64,000 bases of DNA from Octopus sinensis (GCF_006345805.1 NC_043014.1:3596001-3660000); one strand, 5' to 3'; counted from the first letter of the stretch, positions 7,933 through 28,749 are shown. The notes: generated from the letters alone by a model not told the origin. Numbers and translations are program-made.

Positions 7933-8277
7933 CTGAAAGAAAACGGATGATCAAAAGAGAATTTACTGAAACCATTTTATGTGGCAACACTTGGTTGTCA
8001 AATGTGGCACTTTACTCTCACTCCCTTTCTCACTCTCTCTCTCTCACTCACACAGCCCAAATAACCCCTTCAAAAAACGTCTATATACAGACACATTCCC
8101 CCTTATTCTCATCCCTTCTTAACTTCCCACAGTCAAAGGCCATTGCAGAAGGCACACAATGTGCTGTGCAGTGAGGTTGAACCTAAAACCACATGGTTTG
8201 GAAGAGAACTTGTTACCCACATGCCTGCACCTAAAATAAAGTGTATATATATATATATATATATATATATTTTAAAA

Positions 8278-8656: not shown

Positions 8657-8891
8657 TATATATGTTTAACACTCCTTGGGTGACAGATTTTCTAGGGCTT
8701 GATGCCCAGTGATGAGAGAGAAATAATTCTCTCTGTTTTTTCCCCAATCCCTACATTAACAATGAATTAAAGGTGTGTGTGGTCAATAGCACTGCTAGAA
8801 ACAGCAACTAAATGTCTCTTGTATTACACTCTGCTGTCTGATCATATGAAGTACTCATTGAATAATTATATAATATATATATATATATGTA

Positions 8892-8934
<43 letters not shown>

Positions 8935-8984
8935 TATATATATAATATATATATATATATTATATATATATATGTTATATTATG

Positions 8985-9054
<70 letters not shown>

Positions 9055-9060
9055 CTGTAG

Positions 9061-9440
9061 ATGCAAAATGGCCCAGTGATTAGGGCAGTGGACTCATAGT
9101 TGTAGGATCACAGTTTCAATTCCCAGACTGGACAATGTGAGTGTTTATTGAGTGAAAACACGCCTAAAGCTCGATGAGGCTCCAGCAGTGGGGGTGGGAG
9201 GGTGAACCCTACTGTACTTTTTCACTGCAACTTTCTCTCACTCTTTTTTCCCTGTTTCTATCGTGCCTGTAATTAAAAGGGGCCAGCCTTGTCACACTCT
9301 GTGTCATGCTCAATCTACCCGAAAACTATGTTAAGGGTACATGTGTCTGTGGAGTGCTCAGCCACTTGCATGTTAATTTCACAAGCAGGCTGTTCCATTG
9401 ACTGGCTTAACTGGAACCCTCGTAACTGACAGAGAGCCAC
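9061..9440 (+). mobile_element. tRNA-derived SINE (copies at 13963-14330 + and 27740-28125 -)
   Basis: A-box-like TGGCCCAGTGATTAG, B-box-like GTTTCAATTCC, shared body. Confidence 0.65.
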
Positions 9441-10421
9441 AATATATATACATATATATATAAGTAAATATAAGAGAGTGGTCACTATGTGGCTCACTCC
9501 TTATTAATTAATTATATATATATATATATATATTGTTATATTAAAAGCCTGGGTGCATTGTGTTCCGTTATTTAATAAATGAAAGAAACGTTTGTAAATA
9601 CACAAACAACACGTGAAAATGTATAACGTATATGAAGTGCACAAACAGATGGAAGACACACGCAGAAGGTCCCTAATTCTTGATCAGTTATCAACCAAAT
9701 GGTATAACTCAGTTTCACACCCTTAATTATATAATTGTGTGCATGCACATTGATATCCCCGGCCCCTGTCTAGTATTAGCAGTGAAGAAAATAAACTGGT
9801 CAAGCATCAAAGGCTTGACTTAGCAGTCGTTCAGGAGGAGTTGACAAAATACATCCTGCACTTGGAATGATTGTGGAAACAAATGTTGGGGACAAAGCCC
9901 CAGCATGGGCACAATCCAGTGACTGAAACCAGTAAAAGATTAACATTTAGGGTAAACACTTATGTGCTGTCCCCTGTCCTTGAATGCAGGAGTCCATGAC
10001 TCATCAGGCAGTGAATGAGGTCTGTAGGTGTTTGAGTCCCTTCCACTGTGAAACCAGAGATACCCAGGGCAACCCAACAAACTACATGATGTTGAGATCC
10101 TGGGCCAGATGTTTCTATCCTGTCTCCCATGCTCATTCTTCCTGCATCACTCATCTCCTCTCTCAACCCAGATGTAATGACTTGCTTTGTGAGAATCTTC
10201 CAAGAATTTTCTGGCAACATTATTTCCCACCTTCACACCTAATCCAAGAATCTTGAGCATTGAGTGAACACTGGTTCCAATCAATCTCCAAACGCCAATC
10301 TCTGGAGGAAGGCACATTGCCTCCCATCCATTCTTTACACAGAATCCAACCAACTCACTGTGTTTTCTGTGATTTCTGAAGAAATAATAATAGCAACAGA
10401 GAAGAAAAGCAGACAACTTAC

Positions 10422-10703
10422 AGTCAACTTCCCAGGTTTGTTTATCTTCCAAAGAACTTGACCCCACTCTACATGTAGCCGTCTTGGTTGTCTTGGTGAC
10501 TTGAAATGTTAGGCTTGCAGTTTGTGTGAAAATGCACTGATCGACCTGTTTAACTGGTGGGTTTGGTTTAGCGCAGGTATTGCCAACACAAAGTTGTAAT
10601 TCCTGTGCAGGACTTCCAACGTTACTCTCGCAAAAAACGGTGACAATGTCATTGAGAATTTGATTATTAGAAGGAGCCGTCAGATTGGGAGTTCCAGCTG
10701 GAC
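10422..10703 (-). CDS. Three-Ig protein, left copy, exon 3 (Ig domain 2, C2-like)
   Basis: ctacag acceptor, GTAAGT donor, 282 nt, phase 1-1. Motifs VTVFCESNVGSP and TATCRV. Confidence 0.85.
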
Positions 10704-10883
10704 CTGTAGGAAAAAAGAAATGGAAAGAAAAGGGGACATTTAAAAGCAAGAAGTAATGTTTAGGGAAGTTAAGGATCATCAACAATTTCATTGTATGTGA
10801 GAGAGAGAGAGGGGAGGACGGGGATAGAGGGGAAGAGGGAGAGGAGAGAGAGAAAGGGGGAGTAGATAAAGGTAACTCCTTAC

Positions 10884-11219
10884 CCAGAACATCAAGTGTC
10901 TCACTGTTACTCTTCAATGCAGCAGCATTTTGATTCACCACCTCACACCTGTAATTCCCTCGGTCAGAGCAAGACAAAGAACTGATCGTATACTTATAGT
11001 AATACTGGTTGCCTGAACCATTGACTGAAGTGTTGGGATCACTTTGACCTGAAACAACAGGAGTAAAGGCTGTAGCAATCTGGTTGTCATTATGCATGAA
11101 AATAGCATTGTACTGAAGTACTGTGGTGGTGGCATTGCAGAAGAACTGAGCAGAATCACCAATTTTGGCAGAAGTAGAGATGGAGAATGTCACTGCTTGA
11201 GATTTCACAACTGGAACAC
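10884..11219 (-). CDS. Three-Ig protein, left copy, exon 2 (Ig domain 1)
   Basis: tttcag acceptor, GTAAGG donor, 336 nt, phase 1-1. B-strand Cys (QFFC) and F-strand DRGNYRC motif. Confidence 0.9.
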
Positions 11220-11728
11220 CTGAAATGATGGAAAGACAGAAAGATTAATAAACATGAATGTCTGGCTACTTTTTTCTTTACTTCTTTCATTCATTAGACT
11301 GTGGCCATGCTGGGGCACCACCTTGAACAGCTTTTAGTTCAACGAATTGACCCCAGTGCATTTTTTTAAGACTCATACTTATTTCACTGCTCTCTTTTTG
11401 CCAATCTGCTAAGTTATGGAGATGTAAACAAACCAACACCGGTTGCCAAGTGGTATGGTAAACTAACACAGACACAAAGCCACACACACACATACACACA
11501 CAATGGGCTTCATTCAGTTCCTGCCAACCAAATCCCCTCACAAGGTTTCAGTCAGCTCAAGTCTATAGGAGAGGACATTTGCCCATTAGTGCCATGCAGT
11601 GGGACTGAACTTAGAACCATGTGGCCGGAAAGTAAACTTCTTTCCACACAGCCACCCCTGTGCCCTTCTATACAAATATGTATGGGTATATGTAACCATC
11701 TATCTTCCTCTCACTCCCTTTCTCTCTG

Positions 11729-11793
<65 letters not shown>

Positions 11794-11828
11794 GTATCTA
11801 TCTATCTATCTATATATATATATATATA

Positions 11829-12226
11829 CTAGCAGTATCGCCCGGCGTTGCTCGGGTTTGTAAGGTAAATAACTATATAAGCATTTTTAGTGAGTTATAG
11901 CAAAAAAATAGCAAAAAATGCATTAAAATGGAATAAAAAATTATGGTAATTTTTTTTTTAAATCGTTGACTCATCGTAGACATTTTTAGAGAGTTACTTC
12001 CCTTATATAATAGCGAAAAATGCATTAAAATGGAATAAAAAATGATGGTAAATTTTTTTTAAAATTGTAGACTCATCGTAGACGCGCACTAATACGCAGA
12101 AGGGCTCGATATGAATCACGACTAAAAGATACCGGGTTTTGGTTAAACTGCACCACAAAATGTGGGAGTAGTTAGGAATCTAAATCATAGGAGACAGACA
12201 CACAACTTCACTTTTATATATAAAGA
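11829..12226 (-). mobile_element. Non-autonomous Helitron with internal duplication
   Basis: TC...CTAG termini, same family. A further partial copy lies at ~12515-12730. Confidence 0.8.
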
Positions 12227-12748
12227 TTTGTGCAACAACTAAAACATTTGGTTGTGCAAATTGTTTGCACAGGAAACCTGCCCTGTGTGGCTGTAATTGC
12301 CGTTTTTGTGGATCTGTTTCAGCTTTTTAGCGATTTCTGTTTTGGCGACTTCAAGCCATGAAGTCGTTGTTCTAAAAGAACGCTGGTCTCCTTGACAACG
12401 CATTACGACGTTGATTTCCTTACACTCCCTTCCCCACAGCTTCACGAGGGAGGGAAGAAGGGGGAGAAGCAACACAGGTGTGAGCGTGGACGCCAATTCC
12501 GCCGCCATCGGCACACGAAAAATTATGCATTAAAATGGAATAAAAAATGATGTTAAATTATTTTTAAAATTGTAGACTCATCGTAGACGCGCGCTAATAC
12601 CCAGACGGGCTCGATGTGAATCACGACTATAAGATACCCAAATTTGGTTAAACTGCACCGCAAAATGTGGGAGTAGTTAGGAATCTAAATCGAAGGGGAC
12701 AGACACTCACACAACTACAGTTTTATATATATATATACATATATATAT

Positions 12749-13871
12749 ATTGATTTGCTTTTCGCAGGAAGGAAGTTTTCTTCGAAGTATACGTCTCGCT
12801 TTTATCCTTCGAAACGGTTAGTAGATGAAACCTTAGCGACTGAAGAAGGGGATTTTTCGTTGTGCTTATTGTCCTGTATCTCTCTTTTTTTGCTTGTCTT
12901 GTTCCTTGGTTTGTGTCTATGTGTTTCGTCTCTCTATGTGTTCGACGTCTTTTTGGTGCCTGTACACATATATGCGTGTATATGTACATGTAGAGGTAGG
13001 TACGTACATATATGTTTATATATATGCATATTTCTATTATTAACATATTATACGACAAACGCACGCACCCTATTAGTAAGATTGTTCTGTTTATCAAGTT
13101 AGCCTTGATATTAACTCTCACGCGACTCTGCATCTTTCTTTCTTCTCTCCCATTCCCTTTTTCGTCTTTTTCCCTCACTTAACTTGTCTCTTCCTCTCTC
13201 TCTCCCCCCCACCGTTCTTCATGGTCTCCTCGCACCATTCCCTTCTTCTCTCTCTTCCTCTTGCTCCTCCTCCCCCATTCCCGTCATCCATCTGCGACGA
13301 TACTTCCGTCGTAACTGCTATCCTGTCTTTTCTTGCCCGCCTTCTAAGGCTACTGGTCGACATTCTTTCTCTCTCGTCGTCCACTATAATCCAGCGTTTG
13401 CAATACTTTTTTCGTCTGGCGTTAACAGCCCTTCTTATCTTGTTCTCCTTGTCCTGTCTCTCACTGTGTTATTATTTATTTTTCCACTGTTTATATATAT
13501 ATTTTTTACTGTTTATGTTTGTACTGTCGTTACCGTCTGCTTTTTTTACCCCTCTGTGAAAAGATCTCAGAATTTTAATTGATTTGCTTTTCGCAGGAAG
13601 GAAGTTTTCTTCGAAGTATACGTCTCGCTTTTATCCTTCGAAACGTTTAGTAGATGAAACCATAGCGACTGAAGAAGGGGATTTTTCGTTGTGCTTATTG
13701 TCCTGTATCTCTTTTTTTGCTTGTCTTGTCCTTGGTTTGTGTCTATGTTTTTCGTCTCTCTATGTGTTCGACGTCCCTTTGGTGTCCTGTACTCATATAT
13801 GCGTGTATATGTACATGTAGAGGTAGGTACGTACATATATGTTTATATATATGCATATGTTCTATTTTATT

Positions 13872-13878
<7 letters not shown>
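12749..13878 (+). repeat. Two ~295-bp direct repeats flanking a ~540-bp non-coding core
   Basis: 12749-13045 and 13578-13878. Confidence 0.8.
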
Positions 13879-13912
<34 letters not shown>

Positions 13913-14424
13913 GAGCATGTGCATGTGTGTATATATACATATATATATGTTTATATGTGGAGGAGCAATGGCCCAGTGGTTAGGGCAGTGGATTTCCAGT
14001 TTCGATTCCCAGACCGGGCGTTGTGAGTGTTTATTGAGTGTAAATATTTTAGGCTCCACGAAGCTCCGGGCAGGGGCAGGTGGTGAACCCTGCTGTACAC
14101 CATCACCACAGCTTTCTCTCACACTTTCTTCCTGTTTCTGTTGTACCTGTATTTCAAAGGGTCACCTTGTCACAATCCGTGTCACGCTGAATCTCCCTGA
14201 GAATATGTTAAGGGTACACGAGTCTGTGGTGTACTCTGCCACTTGCACGTTAATTTCATGAGCAGTCTGTTCGGTTGATTGGGTCGACTGGAACCCTTGT
14301 CTTCGTAACCGACGGAGTACTGGAGTAGCATATATTGATATATACATTTATATGTGTGTGTGTGTATGTGTATATATATATATATGTGTGTGTGACTGTG
14401 TCTGTGTATATACATATGTGTATA

Positions 14425-14466
<42 letters not shown>

Positions 14467-14469
14467 AGC

Positions 14470-14850
14470 ACAGGAGCGGCTGTGTGATAAAACGCTTGCT
14501 TCCGAACCACAAGGTTCCGGATTCAGTCCCACTACGTGGAACCTTGGGCAAGTGTCTTTTGCTAGAGACTCAGGCCAACGAAAGCCTTGTGAGTGGACAT
14601 GATAGCCGGAAACTGAAAGAAGCCTGTTGTATATATAAGTATGTATGTGTTTGTTATTTATATCTGTGTTTATCCTCCCACCATCGCTTGACAACCGATG
14701 TTGGTGTGTTTATGACCCGCCACTTAGTGGTTTGGCAAAAGAGACCAATAGAATAAGTACTTGGCTTACAAACAATAATTCCTGGAGTTAACATGTCCAT
14801 CTAAAGGTGGTGCTCCAGCATGGCTACAGTCAAATGATTGCAGCAAGTAA
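14470..14850 (+). mobile_element. tRNA-derived SINE (copies at 2492-2648 -, 11280-11660 -, 24843-25220 -, 25290-25665 +, 35243-35655 +, 52940-53117 +)
   Basis: GGCTGTGTG head, GGTTCAGTCCC-type B box, CAGCATGG(C/T)..CAGTCAAATGA tail. Confidence 0.7.
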
Positions 14851-15134
14851 AAAAAAAGTAATATATATATGTGTTTCTGTATATATATGTGTGCGTGTAT
14901 ATATAGATATATATATTTCTCTGTTATCTTGATGCGGTACGGTGGATTAATTTAAGACTTTAGCTCTTATTTCTAGCAGGTAGATGCTTGTTAAGCATCA
15001 TTACACTTCGTGCAAATATATAATTCATAGCTATTTAATGCTATTGCGCCTGCGATCCACCTATGTCACTGCTGGTGACATCTGATTTCAAATCTCAGTG
15101 TTTGAATGTTTTTTTTTATATATGTATGTATATA

Positions 15135-16677
15135 CACTGTGTCCCACATTATTAGGCAAATGAACCTTCTCTCAATAAATGAATCCATATTCACTTGAAG
15201 ACCTGTTGTTTTTCCATTGACTGTTGGCAACACCTCTCTGTGCACATTCTGTGAGAATAAATCAGATCTGTGCAGACGCCAACAAACGGCAGCCGTTTTT
15301 GTGATTGGGCAAGATTTTCACCGTCACAAATTACTAGGCAAGTGTAATAAAAATGATAATTGTGTCAGAACAGTCATTTAATTAATTCAATAGAAAAGGA
15401 CTTAATGGTAAACATAATAATACATTGGCATTCAAATAGTCACAGCGTTATGATACAGCTCCTAGTGTTTCGTGTATGGCCCTCCACACGCAATAACCTT
15501 CCTTACACGCTGATCCATTGAATTTGTCAAGGTGATGATATCTTCTTGTGTCATGATTTGAGCAGCATCTACAATAGCATCCCAGAGGGCAACTTTACTT
15601 GAAAACTGCCGTCCATCTTGGTAAATGTGCCTCTTCAGGACACTCTACAGGTTCTCAATTGGGTTAAAGTCAAACGACCTTAAGAAAACCCTAAAAGCTG
15701 CAGGGATTCCTTAGAATTTTGGGCTGCATAAGATGAGGCATTATATTGCATAAAGACCAGCCTTTTCTTGAAGAAAAGTTCTTGTATTTGGAACCACGGT
15801 TGGAAATTGTCCTTTAAGATGGTAACATACGTTTTCAATGTCATCTTAATACCATCTGGGACTTTCCATGGTCTGACCATCACACCACAAACGATGCCAA
15901 CCCAAAACATGACCCCACATCTCCCCTGTTGGCATCTCAAGCTATGAGGATTGTTCCCTCTGATTGATTCCCAACCTTTACTCCAGCCATCTGGTTCGTC
16001 AAGGGTAGCACAGCATTTGTCAGTGAACAGAACTGTTGCTAAATCTATCTTCATATATTCTTCTGTCCATTCCTGTCTCTTCTGCTTATGAACAGCCTTC
16101 AGAAGGAGCTTGGCAACAGGTTTAACATTCCTGGTTACCTGCTTCAAGAAGCGACACCTGGTAGTTTTTGATACGTCTTCCCTGCCACAGCATTTGAAGA
16201 CTTCTCTACTTGTCAGACCTGAGTTCCGCACATCTTCACTTTTCTCATGTGACAAAGTATGATTTGAAGCAGCTCTCAACTTACCATTATCTGCCCACGA
16301 CCAAACAGAAATAGGAGACTGCACAAATTCCTTCACTGTTCGGTGATCTTTTCCCACTATTTTTGGTATTTCTATGGTTGTTTTTCCTTTTCCCAGCTCT
16401 GACACGATGTTAGACTTCTCATTCGAGGTAAGATCACGTTTCTGACCCCTAATCACACTTAAATTGGGCACCTGTCGTGTAATTTGGGACAGAAGACATT
16501 TTGCTGGGACACGATAATAGCCGCCGCTTCCTTTTGTCTGCACAGATCTGATTTATTTTAACAGAATGTGCACAGAAAGGTGTTGCCAAAAGTCAGTGGG
16601 AAAATAATTGATTTGCAACGAATATACATTTATTTATTGAGAGACGGTTGAGTCACCTAATTATGTAGGATGCAGGG
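15135..16677 (-). mobile_element. Degenerate Tc1-family DNA transposon (TRT/DD37E-like)
   Basis: TA flanks and imperfect ~150 bp TIRs. Transposase remnant GQKRDLT..LFTD..DEPDGW..MQYN, then an internal deletion and a frameshifted NPIENL tail. Confidence 0.85.
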
Positions 16678-16858
16678 TATATATATCTTTAATATGTATG
16701 TGTGAGTGTGTGTGTATAATTCATTTTTTAAATGTTTGAAACATTACAACTCTTATCTAAACTTTAATTTTAAATATAGCACACACACACACACACACAT
16801 GTTTATAGATAGATAGAGGGAGAGAGCTTGCATACATGCATACCTACAGACATGCATA

Positions 16859-18090
16859 TTAGGTTGTTTCACACGAAATGTCGCATTTGAAAGGTAACAA
16901 TAAAATGTTTCACAAGTGTTAGAGAACTGATTTATTTAATCAAAGTATGATCCATGTTCATTTAAGACGTTTACCCAACGTTTTTCCATGTCATGTATTC
17001 CATCATTATCAAAAAATAAATTCATCTTTTGCTGAGGTAAACTGTCCGAGTGCTTCAATTACCTCTTCTTTATTTAAGAATGTTTTATTGCTTATGAAAA
17101 GCCCAAAATGCTTAAATAAGTGATAATTAGTAGGAGAGATATTAGAGGAATAATGAGGATGTTGCAAAATCTTATAATTCAGGTTTTGCAACTTTTGGAT
17201 CGTAGTTTGAGGATTTGCATTATGGTGGAGCAAAATTGGGCCATCTCTCTTCACTAGTCTGGGTTGCTCCTTCTTCAAATTCTCATGCATACAGTCAATT
17301 TTCTGGCAATACGATGCTGCTGTTACCGTTTCTCCTTGTTGCAAAAATGAATAATGAATAACTCCCTTCACAGACCACCTAAGAGTGACCACTAACTTTT
17401 TAGGGTACAACGGTGGGTTTAGGTAGTGTTTAGGTGAATCTCCTGCATCTGGCCACTGACCTCCTCTCCTGCTGTTGTCAAAGAGTATCCATTTCCCATC
17501 ACAAGAAATGATTTGATGCATAAACGGTCTTTTTCCAGTCAAGAAAGCAATAAGGAGCACACTTTAAGGCATTTGCTTTTTGAATCTCATTCAGTTGATG
17601 TGGAACAAACCTATTCGTTTTCTAGACTTTTCCCAATTTTTATAGGGGTCCAAAAACAGTTGTGTGAGATGTTTGGGGTTCTGATGAAAGTTTTCAAACA
17701 TTTGTTCTTAGATTTTGTTCAACAAAAGCATTTAATCCATCATGCCAAATGACTGATTTTGGCCTACCCCTTGGTTTATTTTCAAGGCTATCATCTCCTG
17801 AACCATCTCTGAACAATTCTGATATCAAAAAATTCCATTACCAAAGACCCACTTGATATTCCGTAGAGCTTCTGCGGCAGAGTGAATGAGTTTGTACTCA
17901 TATGAGAAAATCACTCAACATAGTTTGGTTGTTATCCTTTTCATGAGGTCTGTGGGTATGAATTTTGTGAACCAATATTGTTGGGAAAGAAAAAGAGTGA
18001 AGATTAAATGCAGGGTATACATAATTGAGTTTTTAAAAGACTGAAATAACAAGTAGTTAAAAACGTGACATTTCATGTGAAACAACCTAA
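16859..18090 (-). mobile_element. Degenerate mariner (cecropia/Hsmar1-like)
   Basis: TIR TTAGGTTGTTTCAC with TA flanks. Motifs CDGKWILFDN, LLHHN and SPTNYHLFKH; two catalytic Asp positions are mutated. Confidence 0.9.
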
Positions 18091-18274
18091 TACATACATA
18101 CCCACATATTTGGCCCCTTGGGGGTAATAAAAAATCAACATAAATACCAACATATTTAGATGCAAAGAGACAGACAGACTGACAAGCAGCAAGCAGTTAT
18201 GAGAGGTATAAAGAGAGGAAAAGATGAAGATTGGTGAGAGACGATACTTTCTGAAGACAATTCCAAATACTTAC

Positions 18275-18335
18275 CAAACAGCAACAACAACAAGAAACTT
18301 GTTAGAAGTAAAGAAATCTCCATTAGAAAGTTCAT
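18275..18335 (-). CDS. Three-Ig-domain protein, left copy, coding exon 1 (signal peptide MNFLMEISLLLTSFLLLLLF)
   Basis: ATG at 18335, 20 mostly hydrophobic codons plus 1 nt, GTAAGT donor (phase 1). Identical 61-nt exon in the right arm. Confidence 0.8.
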
Positions 18336-18442
18336 CCTCGTTAATTAATCCGTCTTAATCAGTTTGCTGGATTCAGATAATTCCAATGGAAATGTGCAAA
18401 AGTAAAAGAAAATATGTTATAAATTTAAAAAAATTATAATCC

Positions 18443-18523
<81 letters not shown>

Positions 18524-19028
18524 AACGTATGTTTGTATGTGTGTATTTGACAGGGAAATGAACTTATTATTGATGAAATAAGTTTGATTTAAATTCCATC
18601 CAGATAACAGTTGAAGCATGTTTGTTTGATCAGAGATTTCCATACAACAATAAAAAAAAAAATCTCTCTCTCACTCTCCCTCTTTCTCTCTCTTTTTGCA
18701 AACACACACACACACATATATATATATATAAGTCCGTAGGTGACTTAAAACTGTATGATAGATTGCCGTTAATTCATTCTCTTTTACCTGTTTGTGTTTG
18801 CCTTTCAAATGCTGTGCCTTTACTGTGATCTCCCTTTTAGTAGAAGAAATAGCTATAATCTCTTTGACTGCTATTTCTAAATTCGGTGTGTGGTAAGGCA
18901 ATTCGTTGCTAAACCCTTAATTGCTTAGTATTACTTAAATTTTCCTCGAATGAGGCTTTTACATGCCGAAGACTACTTGGTGTAATTGATAATTGTTCCA
19001 AATTAATTAATTTCACCCTTCATTGTTA

Positions 19029-19078
<50 letters not shown>

Positions 19079-19907
19079 TACATAGATACATGCATATGTA
19101 CATACATATACAAATATATATATATATATAATATATATATATATACACACATATCTATATATATATTTATTTATATACACATACATACACACATATATAT
19201 ATATATATAAATTTTAAATTTTATCTAGTTTCAGCTCACAAGCTGTGGCCATGCTGGGGCACCGCCATTCATGTATGATTCCTTCTTTCTCTCTCTTCTC
19301 TCTCTTTGTTGCGTTTGTCCCTCCTCTCTCTCTCTCCTCTCTCTCTCTCTCCTCTCTCTCTCTCTTCCTTTGCTTCTCTTTCTTTTCTTTTCTCTCTTCT
19401 CTGTCACGTGACTGCTGGCCGAAATCTGCCTTTCAGCTTCTCACCAGCGTCGTGTTAACATCGTTGTTTTTCGTCCGCCGCTATAGGCATCGCCGATAAG
19501 GCTCCTTTCCAATGCGCCAGAGAAAAAATTTGTTTGCTTGTTATCAGTCGTAAGACACTTGTTGTTGTTTTCACCGTTAATGCTTCTGTATTTCATGTTT
19601 CTGTATTCCATTATTGTTTTTTGTTTTTTTTTATTCGTCCCTTTTGCTGTCCTGGTGTTCGTATGCATTCGATCCTTCTTCCAGGAAATCTACGCTCCCA
19701 GCTTAGTTTTTCTAATGCTCGTTGCTTAGTTTTTCTTGGAGGGCTGGCCGTGATCTAGTAATCTCAAGATTAATCAGCTGAAGTTACTACGATGATCCGG
19801 TTCTTGACTGAAGACTGAGGGTTTCGAATGTCCTGTCCGTGTTTATTTTATCGTCTTCTAAGAGTTATACGTTCTTGTCCATGTTGTATTTTTTACATAC
19901 CTTAACA

Positions 19908-19941
<34 letters not shown>

Positions 19942-19987
19942 GTATTTCTAAAATTATGGTTTTCCAAGATGCATGGGTGTATACAAA

Positions 19988-20025
<38 letters not shown>

Positions 20026-20325
20026 ACATACTTAACGTCCTTCCCCTATTTTCTAGTATGCAAGGCATGCAATAATATCAGATACCATCACATGACAACA
20101 CCCCCTTCCATCCCCCCCGTCCCAATCTACTACCACCCCACCACATACCTGCTCTGCCCCCTCCATCTACCCATATATATATATATATATACATATATAC
20201 ACATACATATATATATAGTAGTTTATATAAACAGATATAGATTTAAAATACACACAAGCACACACACACACACAGTCACATACATATTGTATTAGTAGGG
20301 CGCTCAGGAATATGAATAAAACAAG

Positions 20326-20363
20326 TCTTTTACGTTTCGAGCCTAGGCTCTTCAACAGAAAGA
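20326..20363 (-). ncRNA. Minimal type I hammerhead-like motif (one core change)
   Basis: TCTTT-CTGTTGA-A-GAGC(CTAG)GCTC-GAAA-CG-TA|AAAGA. Confidence 0.55.
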
Positions 20364-20733
20364 TACACAGAAAAGAAACACAGAGAGAAACAAGGAGAGA
20401 AAAAAAATGCGTGCAGAAGCTAGTGATTCATATATATATATATATATATATAATAATAATAAATATTAGGGAATAAATCCAAATTTACAGGGAAAAATCA
20501 GATTTAGGATTAAATCCAATTTTATAGTAAAATATTATATAATATTAATTAGAGACAAAACCACTATTTTGTAAAACAAACAAGGAAAGACTTAATCAAT
20601 ACATAAAATTTTAATAAAAAGTAAAAAATAAAAAATAAAAAATAAAATTTATTAAAATTTTATGTATTGATTAAGTCTTTCCTTGTTTGTTTTACAAAAT
20701 AGTGGTTTTGTCTCTAATTAATATTATATATAT

Positions 20734-20765
<32 letters not shown>

Positions 20766-21369
20766 ATATATAGTAGTTTATATAAACGGATATAGATTTA
20801 AAATGCACACAAACACACACAGACACATACATATATATACGGACGCAATTATGTTCATATATCTATGGGGTAATTTCAATTATGTGTGAATATGTCTGTG
20901 TGTATGTTTGTGAAAGCATGTAATATTGTATTTCAGTACCAATGTAGCTATTTATGCATACATGTGCAAACCACACACACACACACACACTCCACACTCG
21001 AGTACATTCCCTCCCACTCCCACTCATACTTACACTCACCCTCCATTGCAAAATGGCGTCTATACCCACCCCGATCCAGTGATTGGTTGCTGTCCTGTAG
21101 AAATTAACTCACTTCAAACTTTTCTGGCACTTTTTTCTCCCCTCCATCTGCCCCACGATCGATCTGCTCCAACTTTATCTTAACAATTTTACCTCTTCTT
21201 TCTACAATTATCCCTTTTAGTCAACAATAACAACCACCAGGCACCTGCAAAGCAATCAATTCGGATTATAATTTCTTAAAGTTTATAACATATTTTCTTT
21301 TACTTTTGCACATTTCCATTTGAATTATCTGAATCCAGCAAACTGATTAAGACGGATTAATTAACGAGG

Positions 21370-21430
21370 ATGAACTTTCTAATGGAGATTTCTTTACTTC
21401 TAACAAGTTTCTTGTTGTTGTTGCTGTTTG
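21370..21430 (+). CDS. Three-Ig protein, right copy, coding exon 1 (signal peptide)
   Basis: ATG at 21370 and GTAAGT donor; identical to the left copy. Confidence 0.8.
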
Positions 21431-21613
21431 GTAAGTATTTGGAATTGTCTTCAGAAAGTATCGTCTCTCACCAATCTTCATCTTTTCCTCTCTTTATACC
21501 TCTCATAACTGCTTGCTACTTGTCAGTCTGTCTGTCTCTTTGCATCTAAATATGTGGGTATTTATGTTGATTTTTATTACCCCCAAGGGGCCAAATATGT
21601 GGATATGTATGTA

Positions 21614-22856
21614 TTAGGTTGTTTCACATGAAATGTCACGTTTTTAACTACTTGTTATTTCAGTCATTTAAAAACTCAATTATGTATACCCTGCATTTAA
21701 TCTTGACTATTTTTCTTTCCCAACAATATTGGTTCACAAAATTCATACTCACAGACCTCATGAAAAGGATAACAACCAAACTATGTTGAGTGATTTTCTC
21801 ATATGAGTACAAACTCATTCACTCTGCCGCAGAAGCTCTACGGAATATCAAGTGGGTCTTTGGTAATGGAATTTTTTGATATCAGAATTGTTCAGAGATG
21901 GTTCCTAAATCTTGTTCAGGAGATGATAGCCTTGAAAATAAACCAAGGGGTAGGCCAAAATCAGTCATTCGGCATGATGGATTAAATGCTTTTGTTGAAC
22001 AAAATCTAAGAACAAAGGTTTGAAAACTTTCATCAGAACCCCAAACATCTCACACAACTGTTTTTGGACCCCTATAAAAAATGGGAAAAGTCTAGAAAAC
22101 GAATAGGTTTGTTCCACATCAACTGAATGAGATTCAAAAAGCAAATGCCTTAAAGTCTGCTCCTTATTGCTTTCTTGACTGGAAAAAGACCGTTTCTGCA
22201 TCAAATCATTTCTTGTGATGGGAAATGCATACTCTTTGACAACTTCAGGAGAGGAGGTCAGTGGCCAGATGCAGGTGAGTCACCTAAACACTACCTAAAC
22301 CCACCATTGTACCCTAAAAAGTTAGTGGTCACTCTTTGGTGGTCTGTGAAGGGAGTTATTCATTATTCATTTTTGCAACAAGGAGAAACGGTAACAGCAG
22401 CTTTGTATTGCCAGAAAATTGACTGTATGCATGAGAATTTGAAGAAGGAGCAACCCAGACTAGTGAAGAGAGATGGCCCAATTTTGCTCCACCATAATGC
22501 ACCTCTTCAAACTACGATCCAAAAGTTGCAAAGCCTGAATTATAAGATTTTGCAACATCCTCCCATTCCTCTAATATCTCTCCTACTAATTATCACTTAT
22601 TTAAGCATTTGGGGCTTTTCATAAGCAATAAAACATTCTTCAATAAAGAAGAGGTAATTGAAGCACTCGGACAGTTTACCTCAGCAAAAGATGAATTTAT
22701 TCTTTTAAATGATGGAATACATGACATGGAAAAACGTTGGGTAAACGTCTTAAATGAACATGGATCATACTTTGATTAAATAAATCAGTTCTCTAACACT
22801 TGTGAAACATTTCATTGTTAGCTTTCAAATGCGACATTTCGTGTGAAACAACCTAA
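21614..22856 (+). mobile_element. Degenerate mariner (duplicate copy)
   Basis: Same TIRs and transposase remnant (ORF 22175-22624). Confidence 0.9.
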
Positions 22857-23041
22857 TATGCATGTATGTAGGTATGCATGTATGCAAGCTCTCTCCCTCT
22901 ATCTATCTATAAACGTGTGTGTGTGTGTGTGTGTGTGTGCTATATTTAAAATTAAAGTTTAGATAAGAGTTGTAATGTCTCAATCATTTAAAAAATGAAT
23001 TATACACACACACTCACTCATACATATTAAAGATATATATA

Positions 23042-24584
23042 CCCCGCATCCTACATAATTAGGTGACTCAACCGTCTCTCAATAAATAAATGTATATTCG
23101 TTGCAAATCAATTATTTTCCCACTGACTTTTGGCAACACCTCTCTGTGCACATTCTGTTAAAATAAATCAGATCTGTGCAGACAAAAGGAAGCGGCGGCT
23201 ATTATCGTGTCCCAGCAAAATGTCTTCTGTCCCAAATTACACGACAGGTGCCCAATTTAAGTGTGATTAGGGGTCAGAAACGTGATCTTACCTCGAAGGA
23301 GAAGTCTAACATCGTGTCAGAGCTGGGAAAAGGCAAAACAACCATAGAAATATCAAAAATAGTGGGAAAAGATCACCGAACAGTGAAGGAATTTGTGCAG
23401 TCTCCTATTTCTGTTTGGTCATGGGCAGATAATGGTAAGTTGAGAGTTGCTTCAAATCATTCTTTGTCACATGAGAAAAGTGAAGATGTGCGGAACTCAG
23501 GTCTGACAAGTAGAGAAGTCTTCAAATGCTGTGGCAGGGAAGACGTATCAAAAACTACCAGGTGTCGCCTCTTGAAGCAGGTAACCAGGAATGTTAAACC
23601 TGTTGCCAAGCCCCTTCTGAAGGCTGTTCATAAGCAGAAGAGACAGGAATGGACAGAAGAATATATGAAGATAGATTTAGCAACAGTTCTGTTCACTGAC
23701 AAATGCTGTGCTACCCTTGACGAACCAGATGGCTGGAGTAAAGTTTGGGTATCAATCAGAGGGAACCATCCTCATAGCTTGAGACGCCAACAGGAGAGAT
23801 GTGGGGTCATGTTTTGGGCTGGCATCGTTTGTGGTGTGATGGTCAGACCATGGAAAGTCCCAGATGGTATTAAGATGACATTGAAAACGTATGTTACCAT
23901 CTTAAAGGAAAATTTCCAACCGTGGTTCCAAATACAAGAACTTTTCTTCAAGAAAAACCTGGTCTTTATGCAATATAATGCCTCATCTTATGCAGCCCAA
24001 AATTCTAAGGAATACCTGCAGCTATTAGGGTTTTCTTAAGGTCGTTTGACTTTAACCCAATTGAGAACCTGTAGAGTGTCCTGAAGAGGCACATTTACCA
24101 AGATGGACGGCAGTTTTCAAGTAAAGTTGCCCTCTGGGATGCTATTGTAGATGCTGCTCAAATCATGACACAAGAAGATATCATCACCTTGACAAATTCA
24201 ATGGATCAGCGCGTAAGGAAGGTTATTGCGTGTGGAGGGCCATACACGAAACACTAGGAGCTGTATCATAAAGCTGTGACTATTTTAATGCCAATGTATT
24301 ATTATGTTTACCATTAAGTCCTTTTCTATTGAATTAATTAAATGACTGTTCTGACACAATTATCATTTTTATTATACTTGCCTAGTAATTTGTGACGGTG
24401 AAAATCTTGCCCAATCACAAAAACGGCTGCCGTTTGTTGGCGTCTGCACAGATCTGATTTATTCTAACAGAATGTGCACAGATAGCTGTTGCCAACAGTC
24501 AATGGAAAAACAACAGGTCTTTCAATGAATATGCATTCATTTATTAGGAGAAGGTTCATTTGTCTAATAATGTGGGACACAGTG
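23042..24584 (+). mobile_element. Degenerate Tc1-family transposon (duplicate copy)
   Basis: Reverse complement of 15135-16677 with the same lesions; 15 of 287 translated positions differ. Confidence 0.85.
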
Positions 24585-25722
24585 TATATACATACATATA
24601 TAAAAAAAAACATTCAAACACTGAGATTTGAAATCAGATGTCACCAGCAGTGACATAGGTGGATCGCAGGTGCAATAGCATTAAATAGCTATGAATTATA
24701 TATTTGCACGAAGTGTAATGATGCTTAACAAGCATCTACCTGCTAGAAATAAGAGCTAAAGTCTTAAATTAATCCACCGTACCGCACCAACATAACAGAG
24801 AAATATATATATCTATATATACACATATATATATTATTTTTTTTACTTCCTGCAATCATTTGACAGTGGCCATGCTGGAGCACCACCTTTAGATGGACAT
24901 GTTAACTCCAGGACTTATTGCTTGTAAGCCAAGTACTTATTCTATTGGTCTCTTTTGCCAAACCACTAAGTGGCGGGTCATAAACACACCAACATCGGTT
25001 GTCAAGCGATGGTGGGAGGATAAACACAGATATAAATAACAAACACATACATAATTATATATATAACAGGCTTCTTTCAGTTTCCATCTACCAAGACCAC
25101 TTACAAGGCTTTCGTTGGCTTAAGTCTATAGTAAAAGACACTTGCAAAAGTTCCACGTAGTGGGACTGAACCCGGAACCTTGTGGTTGGGAAGCAAGCTT
25201 CTTATCACACAGCCACTCCTGAGAGAAAGGGAGTGAGAGGAAGATAGGTGGTTACATATACCCATACATATTTGTATATAAGGGCACAGGGGTGGCTGTG
25301 TGGAAAGAAGTTTACTTTCCAGCCACATGGTTCTAAGTTCAGTCCCACTGCATGGCACTATGGGCAAATGTCCTCTCCTATAGCCTTGAGCTAACTAGAA
25401 CCTTGTGAGGGGATTTGGTTGGCAGGAACTAAATGAAGCCCATTGTGTATGTGTGCATGTGGCTTTGTGTATGTGTTTGTTCACAATACCACTTGGTAAC
25501 CGGTGTTGGTTTGTTACATCTCCATAACTTAGCAGTTTGGCAAAAAGAGAGCGGTGAAATACGTATGAGTCTTAAAAAATGCACTGGGGTCAATTCATTG
25601 AACTAAAAGCTGTTCAAGGTGGTGCTCCAGTATGGCCACAGTCTAATGACCTCAAGAAGTAAAAAAAAAAAAATAGCCAGACATTTGTGTTTATTAATCT
25701 TTCTGTCTTTCCATCATTTCAG

Positions 25723-26058
25723 ATGTTCCAGTTGTGAAATCTCAAACAGTGACATTCTCCATCTCTTCTTCTGCCAAAATTGGTGATTCTGCTCAGTTCT
25801 TCTGCAATGCCACCACCACAGAACCTCAGTACGATGCTTATTTCATGCATAATGACAACCAGATTTCTAAAGCCATAGCTTCTTATGTTCGAGGTCAAAG
25901 TAGTTCCAACATTTCAGTCACTGGTTCAGGCAACCAGTATTACTATAAGTATTCGATCAGTTCTTTGTCTTGCTCTGACCGAGGGAATTACAGGTGTTAC
26001 GTGGTGAATCAAAATTCTGATCTGTTCAAGACTAACAGTGTGACACTTGATGTTCTGG
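25723..26058 (+). CDS. Three-Ig protein, right copy, exon 2 (Ig domain 1, divergent)
   Basis: Same splice sites and 336-nt length as the left copy; open frame; Cys and DxGxYxC retained. Confidence 0.9.
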
Positions 26059-26256
26059 GTAAGGATTACCTTTATCTACTTTCACTTTTACTCCCCCTTT
26101 CTCTCTCTCCTCTTTCTCTCCCTCTTCCCCTCTATCCTCGTCCTCCCCTCTCTCTCTCTCTCACATACAATGAAATTGTTGATGATCCTTAACTTACCTA
26201 ACAAAATTTCTTGCATTTCAATGTCCCTTTTTGTTCCCTTTTCGTTTTTCCTACAG

Positions 26257-26537
26257 GTCCAGCTGGAACTCCCGATCTGACGGCTCCTTCTAATAATCAA
26301 ATTCTCAATGACATTGTCACCGTTTTTGCGAGAGTAACGTTGGAAGTCCTGCACAGGAATTACACCTTTGTGTTGGCAATACCCGCGCTAAACCAAACCC
26401 ACCAGTTAAACAGGTCGATCAGTGCATTTTCACACAAACTGCAAGCCTAACATTTCAAGTCACCAAGACAACCAAGACGGCTACATGTAGAGTGGGGTCA
26501 AGTTATTTGGAAGATAAACAAACCTGGGAAGTTTACT
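26257..26537 (+). pseudogene. Three-Ig protein, right copy, exon 3 with a 1-nt deletion (frameshift as assembled)
   Basis: 281 nt versus 282 in the left copy; T5 instead of T6 at ~26323. The shifted frame stops at 26450. Also carries a Cys-to-Arg change. Confidence 0.75.
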
Positions 26538-27385
26538 GTAAGTTGTCTGTTTTTCTTCTCTGTTGCTATTATTATTTCTTCAGAAATCAGAGAAAACACA
26601 GTGAGTTGGTTGGATTCTGTGTAAAGAATGGATGGGAGGCAATGTGCCTTCCTCCAGAGATTGGCGTTTGGAGATTGATTGGAACCAGTGGTCACTCAAT
26701 GCTCAAGATTCTTGGATTAGGTGTGAAGGTGGGAAATAATGTTGCCAGAAAATTCTTGGAAGATTCTCACAAAGCAAGTCATTACATCTGGGTTGAGAGA
26801 GGAGATGAGTGATGCAGCAAGAATGAGCATGGGAGACAGGATAGAAACATCTGGCCCAGAATCTGAACATCATGTAGTTTGTTGGGTTGCCCTGGGTATC
26901 TCTGGTTTCACAGTGGAAGGGACTCAAACACCTACAGACCTCATCAGGGGACAGCACATAAGTGTTTACCCTAAATGTTAATCTTTTACTGGTTTCAGTC
27001 ACTGGATTGTGCCCATGCTGGGGCTTTGTCCCCAACATTTGTTTCCACAATCATTCCAAGTGCAGGATGTATTTTATCAACTCCTACTGAACGACTGCTA
27101 AGTCAAGCCTTTGATGCTTGACCAGTTTATTTTCTTCACTGCTAATACTAGACAGGGGCCGGGGATATCAATGTGCATGCACACAATTATATGATTAAGG
27201 GTGCGAAACTGAGTTATACCATTTGGTTGATAACTGATGAAGAATTAGGGACCTTCTGCGTCTGTCTTCCGTCTGTTTGTGCACTTCATATACGTTATAC
27301 ATTTTCACTTGTTGTTTGTGTATTTAGAATAGATTTTAAAAAATTTATTAAGTTACAGAATGCAATGCACCCAGGCTTTTAATAT

Positions 27386-27438
<53 letters not shown>

Positions 27439-27697
27439 CAATTGCAGGGTGGAAGGTTTTTATAAGCCATTTAAGAAACACACAAAAGCCGTTCGATTCA
27501 CTTCAACATTTAAGTTTAATTTGCGACGGATTTTAGCGATGAAAATATTTTGACAAATTAAACTTAAATGTTGAAAGGAATCGAACGGCTTTTGTGTGTT
27601 TCTTAAATGGCTTACAAACACCTTCCACGCTGCAATTGTTTTCGTTTCAGCACACGATCTCAGATCAAATTACTTGCTATGCGAGTACATCTCCGTA

Positions 27698-27742
<45 letters not shown>

Positions 27743-28749
27743 GGCTCTCTGTCAGTTACGAGGGTTCCAGTTAAGCCAGTCAACGGAACAGCCTGCTTGT
27801 GAAATTAAGATGCAAGTGGCTGAGCACTCCACAGACACGTGTACCCTTAACATAGTTGTCAGGGAGATTGAGCATGACACAGAGTGTGACAAGGCTGGCC
27901 CCTTTTAATTACAGGCACAATAGAAACAGGGAAAAAAGAGTGAGAGAAAGTTGCAGTGAAAAAGTACAGTAGGGTTCAACCCCTACCCCCACTGCTGGAT
28001 CCTCATCGAGCTTTAGGCGTGTTTTCACTCAATAAACACTCACATTGCCCAGTCTGGGAATTGAAACTGTGATCCTACAACTATGAGTCCACTGCCCTAA
28101 TCACTGGGCCATTTTGCCTCTACAGATATATATATATATACATATTATTATTCAATGAGTTCTTCATTTGATCAGACAGCAGAGTGTAATACAAGAGACA
28201 TTTAGTTGCTATTTCTAGCAGTGCTATTGACCCCATAGCAATGTTTCAGTCATTGTTAATGTAGGGATTGGGGAAAAAAGCAGAGAAATTATTTCTCTCT
28301 CATCACTGGGCATCAAGCCCTAGAAAATCTGTCACCCAAGGAGTGTTAAACATATATATCATCATCATCATCATCATCATCATCGTCGTCGTTTAGCGTC
28401 CGCTTTCCATGCTGGCATGGGTTGGACAGTGCAACTGGGGTCTGGGAAGCCAGAAGGCTGCACCAGGCCCAGTCTGATCTGGCAATGTTTCTACAGCTGG
28501 ATGCCCTTCCTATCGTCAACCACTCCATGGGTGCTTTTAATGTGCCACCGGCACAGGTGCCAGGCGAGGCTGGCAAAAACGGCCACGATCGGATGGTGCT
28601 TTTTATGTGCCACCAGCACGGAGGCCAGGCGAGGCTGGCAACGGCCACGTTCGGATGGTTCTCTTATGTGCCACCAGTACTGGTATCACAGCTACAATTT
28701 CCATTCATGTTGATCGATGTTGATTTTTATACATATATAGATATATATA

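Follow-up and report, generated by a model that had tools for sequence, protein, structure and literature searches.

What process makes one domain of a duplicated receptor gene diverge while its surroundings stay nearly the same? The question is raised by the window analyzed here, 64,000 nucleotides of the Octopus sinensis genome (GCF_006345805.1 NC_043014.1:3596001-3660000), in which two genes, copies A and B, each encode three immunoglobulin (Ig) domains and are nearly identical in framework, in domains 2 and 3 (D2 and D3), and in the rest of the duplicated arms. We conclude, with a probability of about 0.72, that A and B represent the arms of an inverted duplication in a young cluster, and that their first domain (D1) is under diversifying selection, with loop exchange among paralogs, at a putative ligand-binding surface.

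Two Three-Ig Genes Occupy an Inverted Duplication

Inverted repeats and arm alignment delimit a head-to-head duplication of ~13 kb, with copy A in the left arm (5245-18446, minus strand) and copy B in the right arm (21259-33117, plus strand). The arms diverge by 2.2% (2.25%) and end at 18446 and 21259, leaving a unique central spacer of ~2.8 kb (18447-21258) that separates both first exons. The ATGs of the two genes lie 3.0 kb apart, and the spacer is a possible shared promoter region. Intron 1 of copy A contains a 2.7 kb insertion found in this copy only (11727-14470), a decayed Tc1/Tc3-like transposase ORF (15683-16552, minus; B counterpart 23167-24036, plus) that served as a neutral control, and a Mariner-type transposase relic (17012-17563, minus; Pfam PF01359, E = 5e-19; B counterpart 22154-22621, plus). 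The match of the Tc1/Tc3-like relic to Pfam HTH_Tnp_Tc3_2 is weak and below threshold. At 38738-41575 (minus) lie orphan 3' exons that belong to a family member of the short-tail kind, namely a transmembrane exon (41456-41575) and a cytoplasmic exon (38738-38830). They are upstream of A and on the wrong strand for B, in a segment that is inverted relative to O. vulgaris.

Copy A corresponds to NCBI model XP_036366804.1 (XP_036366804; 329 aa), annotated as "CEACAM5-like", and its protein P0010 equals our splice model except at the C-terminus. Copy B is LOC118766837, annotated at 196 aa, and P0006 is its exact frameshifted translation. In the splice models, exon 1 of A (18275-18335, minus) encodes the signal peptide MNFLMEISLLLTSFLLLLLF plus G and ends at a GTAAGT donor; exon 1 of B (21370-21430, plus) has the same sequence, as the first-pass annotation of this locus had claimed. 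Exon 2 encodes D1, a V-like/I-set Ig domain with "C-type" loops in A (10884-11219, minus) and "B-type" loops in B (25723-26058, plus); both exons are 336 nt, have AG/GT borders, and are in phase 1. Exon 3, encoding D2, is intact in A (10422-10703, minus), whereas in B (26257-26537, plus) a 1-nt deletion (T5 at 26323-26327, compared to T6 at 10632-10637 in A) shifts the frame and creates a stop within the exon, which explains why the B model is truncated at 196 aa. The earlier count of five differences in 94 D2 residues holds if this deletion is ignored, but it overlooked the frameshift and stop. This lesion could be a recent pseudogene mutation or a homopolymer error. Exon 4 encodes D3 (I-set) followed in A (7592-7932, minus) by a read-through tail from a (CT)n microsatellite; in B (29175-29527, plus) D3 and the repeat-coded tail are out of frame as assembled. 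The four residue differences previously reported for this exon are accompanied by a four-residue indel in the repeat-coded tail. The NCBI model of A ends instead in a short exon (6151-6174, minus) that reads FVDSVRP and then stop, a sequence also present in the B arm at ~31633-31656.

Exon 2 Diverges Only by Residue-Changing Codons

Realignment reproduced the central observation of the first-pass annotation. Exon 2 differs between A and B at 34 of 336 nt, distributed over 26 codons that all change the residue; there is no silent-only codon, and seven codons carry two or three hits (one hit in 19 codons, two in six, and three in one). The count includes the split first codon (G/GT, Gly in A; G/AT, Asp in B), and the other 86 codons are identical in DNA. 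Within the 111 whole codons, 33 nt differ. Changes group, as described earlier, after the B-strand Cys, the C strand, and the F-strand Cys, and they are clumped beyond random (permutation p = 0.02). The arms as a whole differ by 2.25%, and the divergence of exon 2 lies significantly above this level (p = 6e-13). NG86 estimates gave Sd = 1.5, Nd = 31.5, dS = 0.020, and dN = 0.134 (dN/dS = 6.7; Fisher test p = 0.002-0.015). By comparison, in the dead Tc1 transposase of these arms, which has diverged by 2.2%, three codons are silent-only and 15 are replacement codons; its 15 residue differences had been counted correctly, over a length of 290 residues (19/870 nt) rather than 287. Judged from these codons, the differences in specificity between the copies are shown to sit in D1, where replacement changes have built up several-fold faster than silent or intronic ones.

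The contrast is not confined to the exon. Arm alignment revealed an island of raised divergence of ~1 kb (10704-11726 in A, minus; 25221-26256 in B, plus), sharply bounded by exon 3 on one side and the A-only insertion on the other. Intron divergence reaches 5.8% over the 500 nt upstream of exon 2 and 6.7% in intron 2, compared to 2.2% elsewhere, a feature that had escaped the first-pass annotation. Since the flanking introns are ~3-fold above the arms, part of the exon 2 excess reflects older ancestry or import of a segment rather than divergence in place. Measured against these introns, the replacement-site excess is ~2-fold (p = 0.001) rather than infinite.

Domain 1 Types Are Shared between Species and Mosaic

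We compared the D1 exons of A (sinA) and B (sinB) with those of their relatives. sinB differs by 6 nt from its O. vulgaris ortholog vulP3 (P0003), and the arms are orthologous at 1-2%. The independent O. vulgaris assembly contains the same head-to-head pair, P0003 (minus) and P0004 (plus), and a second such pair formed by P0002 and gene 5a. sinA is closest to the D1 of a third gene, the transmembrane paralog LOC115221682 (sinC), and of its ortholog vulC, from which it differs by 11-12 nt; the homology of A to this C gene ends ~50 nt outside the exon, and the flanks of A resemble other A/B-type genes. The D1 of vulP2 matches P4 in its C'D loop and the B type in its FG loop, down to silent or triple changes in common, and a PHI-type test detected recombination among the D1 exons (p = 0.0002). 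At the level of these alignments, the data show that loop segments have been exchanged among paralogs by short gene-conversion tracts, yielding mosaic D1 exons, and that the D1 types are older than the species splits. Divergence of A and B in place, as implied earlier, does not agree with the presence of B's D1 type in O. vulgaris, the third gene nearest to A, and the mosaic loops. It had also been envisaged that a third paralog might have donated the whole exon with matching silent differences. A related exon does exist, but silent divergence among the D1 types is low (dS 0-0.07), and selection is thus still required.

A Signal of Diversifying Selection in Domain 1

Selection was assessed pairwise on nine D1 exons from O. 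sinensis, O. vulgaris, and O. bimaculoides, and by maximum likelihood on 11 D1 exons from these three species, using our own GY94 code, an NJ tree, and naive posteriors; each species was represented by one assembly. Nearly all pairs of the nine exons had dN above dS, with pairwise omega of 1.2-7, and the excess recurred in bim1-bim2 (p = 0.01), vulP2-vulC (p = 0.012), and sinB-sinC (p = 0.004). Among the D1 types of O. sinensis and O. vulgaris, dN was 0.11-0.16, and the orthologs sinC and vulC are separated by 12 replacement and three silent changes. Across the whole D1 of the 11 exons, M0 omega was 2.20 (LRT against omega = 1, 13.4; p ~ 3e-4). M2a was favored over M1a (LRT 75.6) and placed 34% of sites in a class with omega2 of 7.9; the posterior exceeded 0.9 at 26 sites, although paralog recombination, present in this set, inflates such site-model tests; the partition of D1 into hypervariable and framework portions was defined post hoc, with the data already seen. 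In the control domains, omega was 0.60 for D3 and 1.6 for D2, the latter not significantly different from 1. D1 thus shows the pattern described by Hughes and Nei, a significant excess of dN over dS that is found in the presumed binding domain but in no other domain. These results support and strengthen the earlier proposal of diversifying selection on the N-terminal Ig domain. D1 is also the least conserved domain between Octopus and Argonauta (38% identity; D2, 65%; D3, 48%; tail, 63%).

D1 has the canonical Cys pair, Cys27 and Cys91. A confident AF2 model of the domain (pLDDT 88.4) contains strands A (8-14), B (23-30), C (35-42), C' (45-51), D (63-68), E (71-78), F (87-95), and G (100-108). 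Its Foldseek neighbors are V-type domains (nanobodies, VL, PD-1, LAIR-1). In the model, 21 of the 26 selected sites fall in C, C', F, or G or in the BC, C'D, or FG loops. Those on C (37, 39) and F (90, 92, 94) alternate with core residues F40, Y89, C91, and V93, and it is from this alternation, rather than from computed values, that their surface exposure is inferred. The C/C'/F/G face and loop tip form the partner-binding region of V-type adhesion and immune receptors, and the variable residues of D1 would likewise form the putative binding face of the A/B family.

Copies A and B Probably Derive from a Transmembrane Receptor Family

The full-length relatives P0001, P0009, P0012, and P0004, together with gastropod members, belong to the type I transmembrane proteins: their Ig domains are followed by a stalk, a membrane-spanning helix, and a cytoplasmic tail that is conserved from nemerteans to octopus. 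The octopus genes have long (LOC115221682), short (P0004 and genes 5a-c), or no tails (A, B, and P0003). Within the arms, no transmembrane or tail exons for A or B were found on the strand of the respective gene. Tail motifs of the parent family include IEEPPEKPxNN, DDKPRSRKP, and a terminal PxV. The long octopus tail is without the ITIM/ITSM-like motifs that gastropod relatives show, and no ITIM or ITAM was seen in octopus tails. A GPI signal was defined as a small omega residue, a spacer, and a hydrophobic tail of at least 15 residues; the read-through tail, with the sequence FNSAITAYNSLTLSLALSLSLTL, has only ~13 weakly hydrophobic residues coded by the (CT)n microsatellite, and the FVDSVRP end of the NCBI model has no hydrophobic tail.

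Two descriptions in the first-pass annotation are accordingly unsupported. In the signal-3xIg-GPI layout resembling IgLON or DIP proteins, the presumed GPI tail is translated from a (CT)n microsatellite, and the closest relatives do not share the layout, having a stalk, transmembrane helix, and tail. Activating and inhibitory "paired receptors" combine near-identical ectodomains with opposing signaling parts, an ITIM tail in one and a charged transmembrane residue or ITAM adaptor in the other; this reading is not supported for copies without a transmembrane segment or tail, one of them frameshifted in the assembly. The likeness to IgLON, DIP, and lachesin proteins extends to three Ig domains after a signal peptide, with an I-set D3; similarity to IgLON is confined to D3, and the octopus relatives are transmembrane proteins.

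Vertebrate CEACAM, SIRP, and Siglec receptors resemble the octopus family in having clustered young paralogs with conversion between them, dN above dS focused on the binding face of the N-terminal domain (putative in octopus), and common ectodomains with anchors or tails that differ among members. The octopus genes are not orthologous to CEACAMs: the name of A stems from automated annotation, the CEA similarity is at a generic Ig level (E = 3e-8), and D1 keeps the Cys27/Cys91 pair, whereas CEACAM N domains lack the intradomain Cys pair. The parent layout is like that of nectins and nectin-like proteins (CADM), i.e., signal peptide, V-like, Ig, and I-set domains, stalk, transmembrane helix, and short tail, and gastropod and nemertean relatives bear automated names such as "nectin-3-like" and "CADM4-like". 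The family profile is colinear with CADM4 (5zo1, E = 2e-26) and CD166, in a single stretch that spans the three domains, though many unrelated multi-Ig proteins score higher than CADM4 in the same search. Nectins and CADMs are characterized by a V - C2 - C2/I ectodomain, a transmembrane helix, and FERM- and PDZ-binding motifs in the tail. The tail motifs of the octopus family differ from theirs, which are FERM-binding, EYFI, or ExYV motifs, and clustered hypervariable paralogs are not a known feature of nectins. Amphioxus VCBPs, Hydractinia Alr1/Alr2, and snail FREPs also combine germline Ig domains, hypervariability focused on an N-terminal V-like domain, and clustered genes with recombination or conversion among copies. 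Unlike VCBPs and FREPs, the octopus proteins have no chitin-binding or fibrinogen domain, respectively; Alr- and fuhc-type loci are defined by extreme population-level allelic polymorphism; the octopus family is known here from one assembly per species. The comparison implies no somatic diversification in octopus.

Alternative Explanations

Exchange might suffice without selection if exon 2 was converted from an older paralog, or escaped homogenization of the arms, and the contrast is one of age. The sharply bordered introns flanking exon 2, the proximity of A's D1 to LOC115221682 and its ortholog, the B type common to P0003, and the significant mosaicism are all as this account expects. However, an older donor would have brought silent differences as well, which the low dS belies; replacement sites have diverged more than even the adjoining introns, such an excess also separates the two O. 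bimaculoides paralogs, and C-gene homology stops just beyond the exon, within A/B-type flanks. We consider age by itself improbable as an explanation. Relaxed constraint on one or both copies as pseudogenes could draw on the deletion and premature stop in B, the absence of transmembrane and tail exons from both copies with orphan 3' exons nearby on the wrong strand, and a D2 omega of about 1-2. Yet the neutral rate would be a ceiling, and exon 2 differs by 10%, well beyond the 2.2% of the dead transposase that shares its arms. Moreover, both D1s are free of stops and indels, their unchanged codons are identical, their cysteines and core residues are intact, B's D1 is near-identical to that of an intact O. 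vulgaris ortholog, and T6 to T5 is a typical form of long-read homopolymer error; decay is very improbable on this evidence. It is scarcely credible that one gene has been assembled as A and B, either from its two haplotypes or by a fold-back misassembly: the arms are 97.8% identical and palindromic in an older long-read build, but a fold-back would yield identical arms, only one of these arms carries the 2.7 kb insertion, a unique spacer lies between them, and the independently assembled O. vulgaris genome has this pair plus a second one.

A different question is what drives diversification; the immune, allorecognition, gamete, and neuronal roles suggested earlier are candidate functions. D1 may diversify to set adhesion codes that are homophilic or specific to each paralog (for the wiring of neurons or the sorting of tissues by DIP/Dpr, nectin, or Dscam logic) or for gamete recognition, rather than against a pathogen or other foreign ligand. 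This would suit the likeness of the parent family to three-Ig adhesion receptors colinear with the CADM4 and CD166 ectodomains, the long-conserved tail, and the position of the variation on the GFCC' face, the usual adhesion face. Wiring codes, however, are normally conserved in close species, contrary to the sinC-vulC comparison, and loss of the membrane anchor fits decoys better than adhesion molecules. We hold such a driver to be a tentative option, on balance unlikely.

A Model for the Octopus Cluster

We propose that diversifying selection with loop exchange has acted on a young, fast-rearranging three-Ig cluster on this O. sinensis chromosome, which would derive from a type I receptor conserved in lophotrochozoans, with a signal peptide, V-like D1, D2, I-set D3, Thr/Pro stalk, transmembrane helix, and conserved tail. 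LOC115221682 would represent that receptor in O. sinensis. Copies A and B retain only the signal peptide and three Ig domains and would thus be secreted or truncated forms. The codon patterns point to positive diversifying selection on a putative ligand-binding surface, the most likely driver being a fast-evolving external or partner ligand, and the copies without a tail may serve as soluble forms or decoys of the membrane receptors.

Copies A and B Differ in the First Ig Domain

The two gene copies lie in the arms of an inverted duplication, a "CEACAM5-like" gene (copy A, or sinA) in the left arm (about 5245-18446) and LOC118766837 (copy B, or sinB) in the right arm (about 21259-33117). Exons 2, 3, and 4 encode three Ig domains, D1, D2, and D3. 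The 336-nt exon 2 is located at 10884-11219 on the minus strand in A and at 25723-26058 on the plus strand in B, in each case with AG/GT borders and phase-1 ends. The first-pass annotation described a focused difference between the copies in D1, which we confirmed: 34 positions of exon 2 differ. They fall in 26 codons, including the split first codon (G/GT, Gly, in A; G/AT, Asp, in B), with one hit in 19 codons, two in six, and three in one; there are no silent-only codons. The three clusters of changes quoted in that annotation are correct, and the changes are more clustered than under random placement (p = 0.02). By the NG86 method, there are 1.5 synonymous differences in 75.7 sites and 31.5 replacement differences in 257.3 sites (dS = 0.020; dN = 0.134; omega = 6.7; Fisher test, p = 0.002-0.015). 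Exon 1 is identical in both copies, and exon 4 differs by four residues and a 4-residue indel. A dead transposase in the same arms, serving as an internal neutral control, differs at 15/290 residues and 19/870 nt, with three silent-only and 15 replacement codons. Well-aligned non-coding arm sequence is 2.2% different (76/3372 nt, distal intron 1), compared to 10.1% for exon 2 (p = 6e-13 versus the arm background).

The first-pass annotation overlooked the raised divergence of the adjoining introns (5.8% across 500 nt on the upstream side and 6.7% across intron 2). Because these neighboring introns are also unusually diverged, exon 2 lies inside an island of about 1 kb of older or imported sequence; past this island, divergence falls sharply, with exon 3 differing by 1.8% and the sequence after it by 1.5%. 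When compared to the local flanks, replacement sites of exon 2 are still elevated about 2-fold (p = 0.001) and silent sites are, if anything, lower. This locus illustrates that the arms of a palindrome can stay nearly identical while one exon remains different.

Several repeats accompany the gene pair. A 2.7 kb insertion with internal repeats (11727-14470), found only in intron 1 of copy A, abuts the outer edge of the island exactly. A tRNA-like, SINE-looking segment (GGTTCTAAGTTCAGTCCCACTGC...) lies within the island, in intron 1 just 5' of exon 2 (11590-11660; B counterpart, 25287-25360), with similar copies at other places in the window (e.g., about 14400-14600 and 35240-35660). Intron 1 also carries a Tc1/Tc3-like transposase relic (15683-16552, minus; 23167-24036, plus) and a mariner transposase relic (PF01359; 17012-17563, minus; 22154-22621, plus), which are common to both arms and to the aligned O. 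vulgaris intron-1 copies (P0003, P0004, and a partial copy). Pfam did not recognize the 290-aa "Tc1" open reading frame at E<=0.001; it has a weak Tc3-type HTH match below the Pfam threshold, and the Tc1-like label is tentative because this match is sub-threshold. The O. vulgaris models P0002, P0003, and P0004 have their start wrongly placed within this relic. A related short repeat (translating as LSIYLSIY...) forms long tandem arrays, all of them outside the gene pair, at 3515-4411, 42376-42707, 45529-45734, and 52449-52792.

Exon 3 of copy B contains a run of five T (26323-26327) where copy A has six (10632-10637), a 1-nt deletion that shifts the frame, leads to a stop within the exon, and had been overlooked. 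This deletion explains the 196-aa NCBI model of LOC118766837 (P0006), which is the exact frameshifted translation of copy B; this match assigns the window to O. sinensis. The T run is peculiar to O. sinensis, with a Ser to Phe change (TCT to TTT) in both copies, and its shorter form in copy B may reflect either a genuine lesion or a homopolymer error of long-read sequencing.

The Copies Belong to a Young Octopus Gene Cluster

A protein search with the spliced copy-A model returned seven relatives, every one from Octopus. The annotation of copy A (XP_036366804.1, 329 aa) matches the spliced model save at its end, where a short exon (FVDSVRP, about 6151-6174) takes the place of a (CT)n-coded tail. 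Past D3, the open reading frame of both copies enters a (CT)n microsatellite (7592-7650, minus; 29470-29527, plus), the translation of which (SLTLSLALSLSL...) resembles a hydrophobic tail and differs by four residues in length between A and B. Neither copy has transmembrane or tail exons on its own strand, and the previously proposed GPI-anchored, IgLON-like layout is therefore unsupported; nor did we find support for the label of paired receptors. Within the window, tblastn detected no third paralog, only the two copies and orphan transmembrane (41456-41575) and cytoplasmic (38738-38830) exons of the short-tail P0004 type, both located past B on the minus strand; upstream of them, the window has neither stalk nor Ig exons. 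The segment 33106-42034 is inverted relative to O. vulgaris, in which it is the 3' end of P0004.

A third O. sinensis gene on the same chromosome, LOC115221682 (the C gene, sinC; locus L004), encodes the same three domains and adds a Thr/Pro stalk, a transmembrane helix, and an 87-residue tail. Its Argonauta ortholog shares 52% identity, and relatives of equal length in gastropods and a nemertean share 25-30%, with the tail motifs IEEPPEKPxNN, PDLV, DDKPRSRKP, and a final PxV kept across them. The gastropod and nemertean relatives (P0020, P0022, P0027, and others) conserve LxYADLQFDDKPRSRKP and TDYADVSMPxV in their tails, matching the ITIM (I/V/L/S-x-Y-x-x-L/V) and ITSM (T-x-Y-x-x-V/I) patterns; both tyrosine contexts are lost in the octopus C gene.

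We recovered the O. vulgaris cluster from OX597833.1 (4.29-4.51 Mb). In order, it contains P0002 (minus) head-to-head with 5a (plus), followed by 5b and 5c (both plus); a partial copy (plus) made up of exon 1, intron 1, and a stop-containing D3 exon; P0003 (minus) head-to-head with P0004 (plus); and the C ortholog P0009 (vulC; plus). The model P0011 (931 aa; locus L007, 4303277-4405599) is a fusion of the three tandem genes 5a-5c and omits D3 exons that exist in the DNA. The D1 exons of 5a and 5c are identical, pointing to either a very recent duplication or a repeat in the assembly. The cluster comprises three or more genes in O. sinensis and seven or more in O. vulgaris, and at least two D1 exons are present in O. 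bimaculoides. These comparisons show that this is a young, rearranging octopus cluster that originated from a conserved three-Ig transmembrane receptor, and that its members have a long tail, a short tail, or no anchor.

D1 Types Are Shared Between Genes and Species

The loops of B recur exactly in P0003 (vulP3), with 6 nt differences between the exons, each a replacement. The C genes are the nearest to D1 of A (sinC at 12 nt and vulC at 11 nt), whereas B, P0003, and P0004 are 33-37 nt away (111 whole codons). The homology of A to the C gene ends about 50 nt beyond exon 2, and the flanks of the exon resemble other A/B-type genes. P0002 (vulP2) combines the C'D-loop codons of P0004, one silent change in common, with FG-loop codons of the B type, one triple change in common. 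Silent sites tend to group the genes by species, replacement sites by D1 type, and a PHI-type permutation test was significant (52 informative sites; p = 0.0002). These patterns show that loop segments have been exchanged between paralogs. The D1 exons are thus old relative to the arms and swap segments.

We considered other explanations for the contrast between the copies. The head-to-head arrangement might be an assembly artefact; however, O. vulgaris has such pairs too (P0002/5a and P0003/P0004), so the arrangement is real and recurrent, and we rejected this explanation. Plain pseudogene decay was also rejected. That A and B diverged in place after the duplication, as the first-pass annotation implied, is unsupported, since D1 types are shared with other genes and mosaic among the paralogs. 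sinB is orthologous to P0003 across the whole arm; divergence is mostly 0.3-2.8%, also within the exon-2 island. In intron 1, sinA differs from every other copy by about 2-3%, and in the island it differs by about 5-10% from B/P0003 and from P0004 alike; overall it is about equidistant from P0003 and P0004, with a P0003-like intron 3. One-to-one positional orthology of the O. sinensis and O. vulgaris pairs was rejected, given that the 3' segment is inverted and A is neither P0003- nor P0004-specific.

Replacement Changes Concentrate on One Face of D1

Pairwise comparisons among the O. sinensis and O. vulgaris D1 types gave dN of 0.11-0.16 versus dS of 0-0.07, and the O. bimaculoides pair gave an omega of 2.9. 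We also fitted maximum likelihood models to 11 D1 exons, using our own GY94 code, an NJ tree, and naive posteriors. Omega was 2.20 under M0 (LRT against omega = 1, 13.4). M2a was favored over M1a (LRT 75.6; omega2 = 7.9 in 34% of sites), with posteriors above 0.9 at 26 sites; such site tests are inflated by recombination, the pairwise and whole-domain results being less tied to the tree. With the same code, D3 gave an omega of 0.60 without an M2a signal, and D2 an omega of 1.6 that was not significant. D1 is also the least conserved region between Octopus and Argonauta (38% identity, compared to 65% for D2, 48% for D3, and 63% for the tail). The data thus support the earlier proposal that D1 of a cephalopod Ig family is under diversifying selection, and they extend it to three species.

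In an AlphaFold2 model of A D1 (pLDDT 88.4; pTM 0.82), the strands are A (8-14), B (23-30), C (35-42), C' (45-51), D (63-68), E (71-78), F (87-95), and G (100-108); the C'-D loop is long, and a C'' strand is absent. Foldseek neighbors of the model are generic V-type domains at TM-scores of 0.5-0.7 (nanobodies, VL, PD-1, LAIR-1, and NCAM2 Ig1), and PDB searches by sequence and profile matched Ig domains generically, without pointing to a specific family. Most of the selected sites (21 of 26) map to strands C, C', F, and G or to the BC, C'D, and FG loops; the N-terminal edge has three (7-9) and the opposite sheet two (66 and 77). Selected sites on C (37 and 39) and F (90, 92, and 94) alternate with core residues F40, Y89, C91, and V93, and on this strand alternation are predicted to face outward on the GFCC' face. 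These results show a family-wide replacement excess concentrated at the tip of D1 and along one of its faces, and we infer that D1 is under diversifying selection as a binding surface.

Discussion

We propose, with a probability of roughly one in four, that the cluster is a germline "loop-shuffling" recognition system. V-like D1 exons would trade CDR-like segments through short gene conversions under positive selection, so that the repertoire of three-Ig receptors (membrane-bound, short-tail, and secreted) would differ from species to species and perhaps from one individual to the next; these receptors would act in immune or self/non-self recognition. Apart from that proposal, A and B would encode secreted or truncated products, perhaps soluble or decoy counterparts to the membrane receptors. 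The nearest functional analogy is with vertebrate CEACAM, SIRP, and Siglec-type families and with diversified IgSF molecules of invertebrates, with membership in none of these established. In architecture, the parent gene is nearest to nectin/CADM, a likeness of layout that does not establish membership.

In the literature collection searched, neither gene and protein accessions nor topic queries led to anything on the octopus three-Ig family. Cephalopods are large, long-lived, and complex invertebrates, and we know of no diversified recognition receptor family described from them. An omega above 1 for the domain as a whole, CDR-like hot spots, D1 types that span species, and exchange of loops between paralogs make this small, tractable cluster a concrete candidate for specific recognition in octopus, whether immune-type or other. 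If the loop-shuffling reading is true, it would place diversified receptors in an animal group where none are known to have been described.
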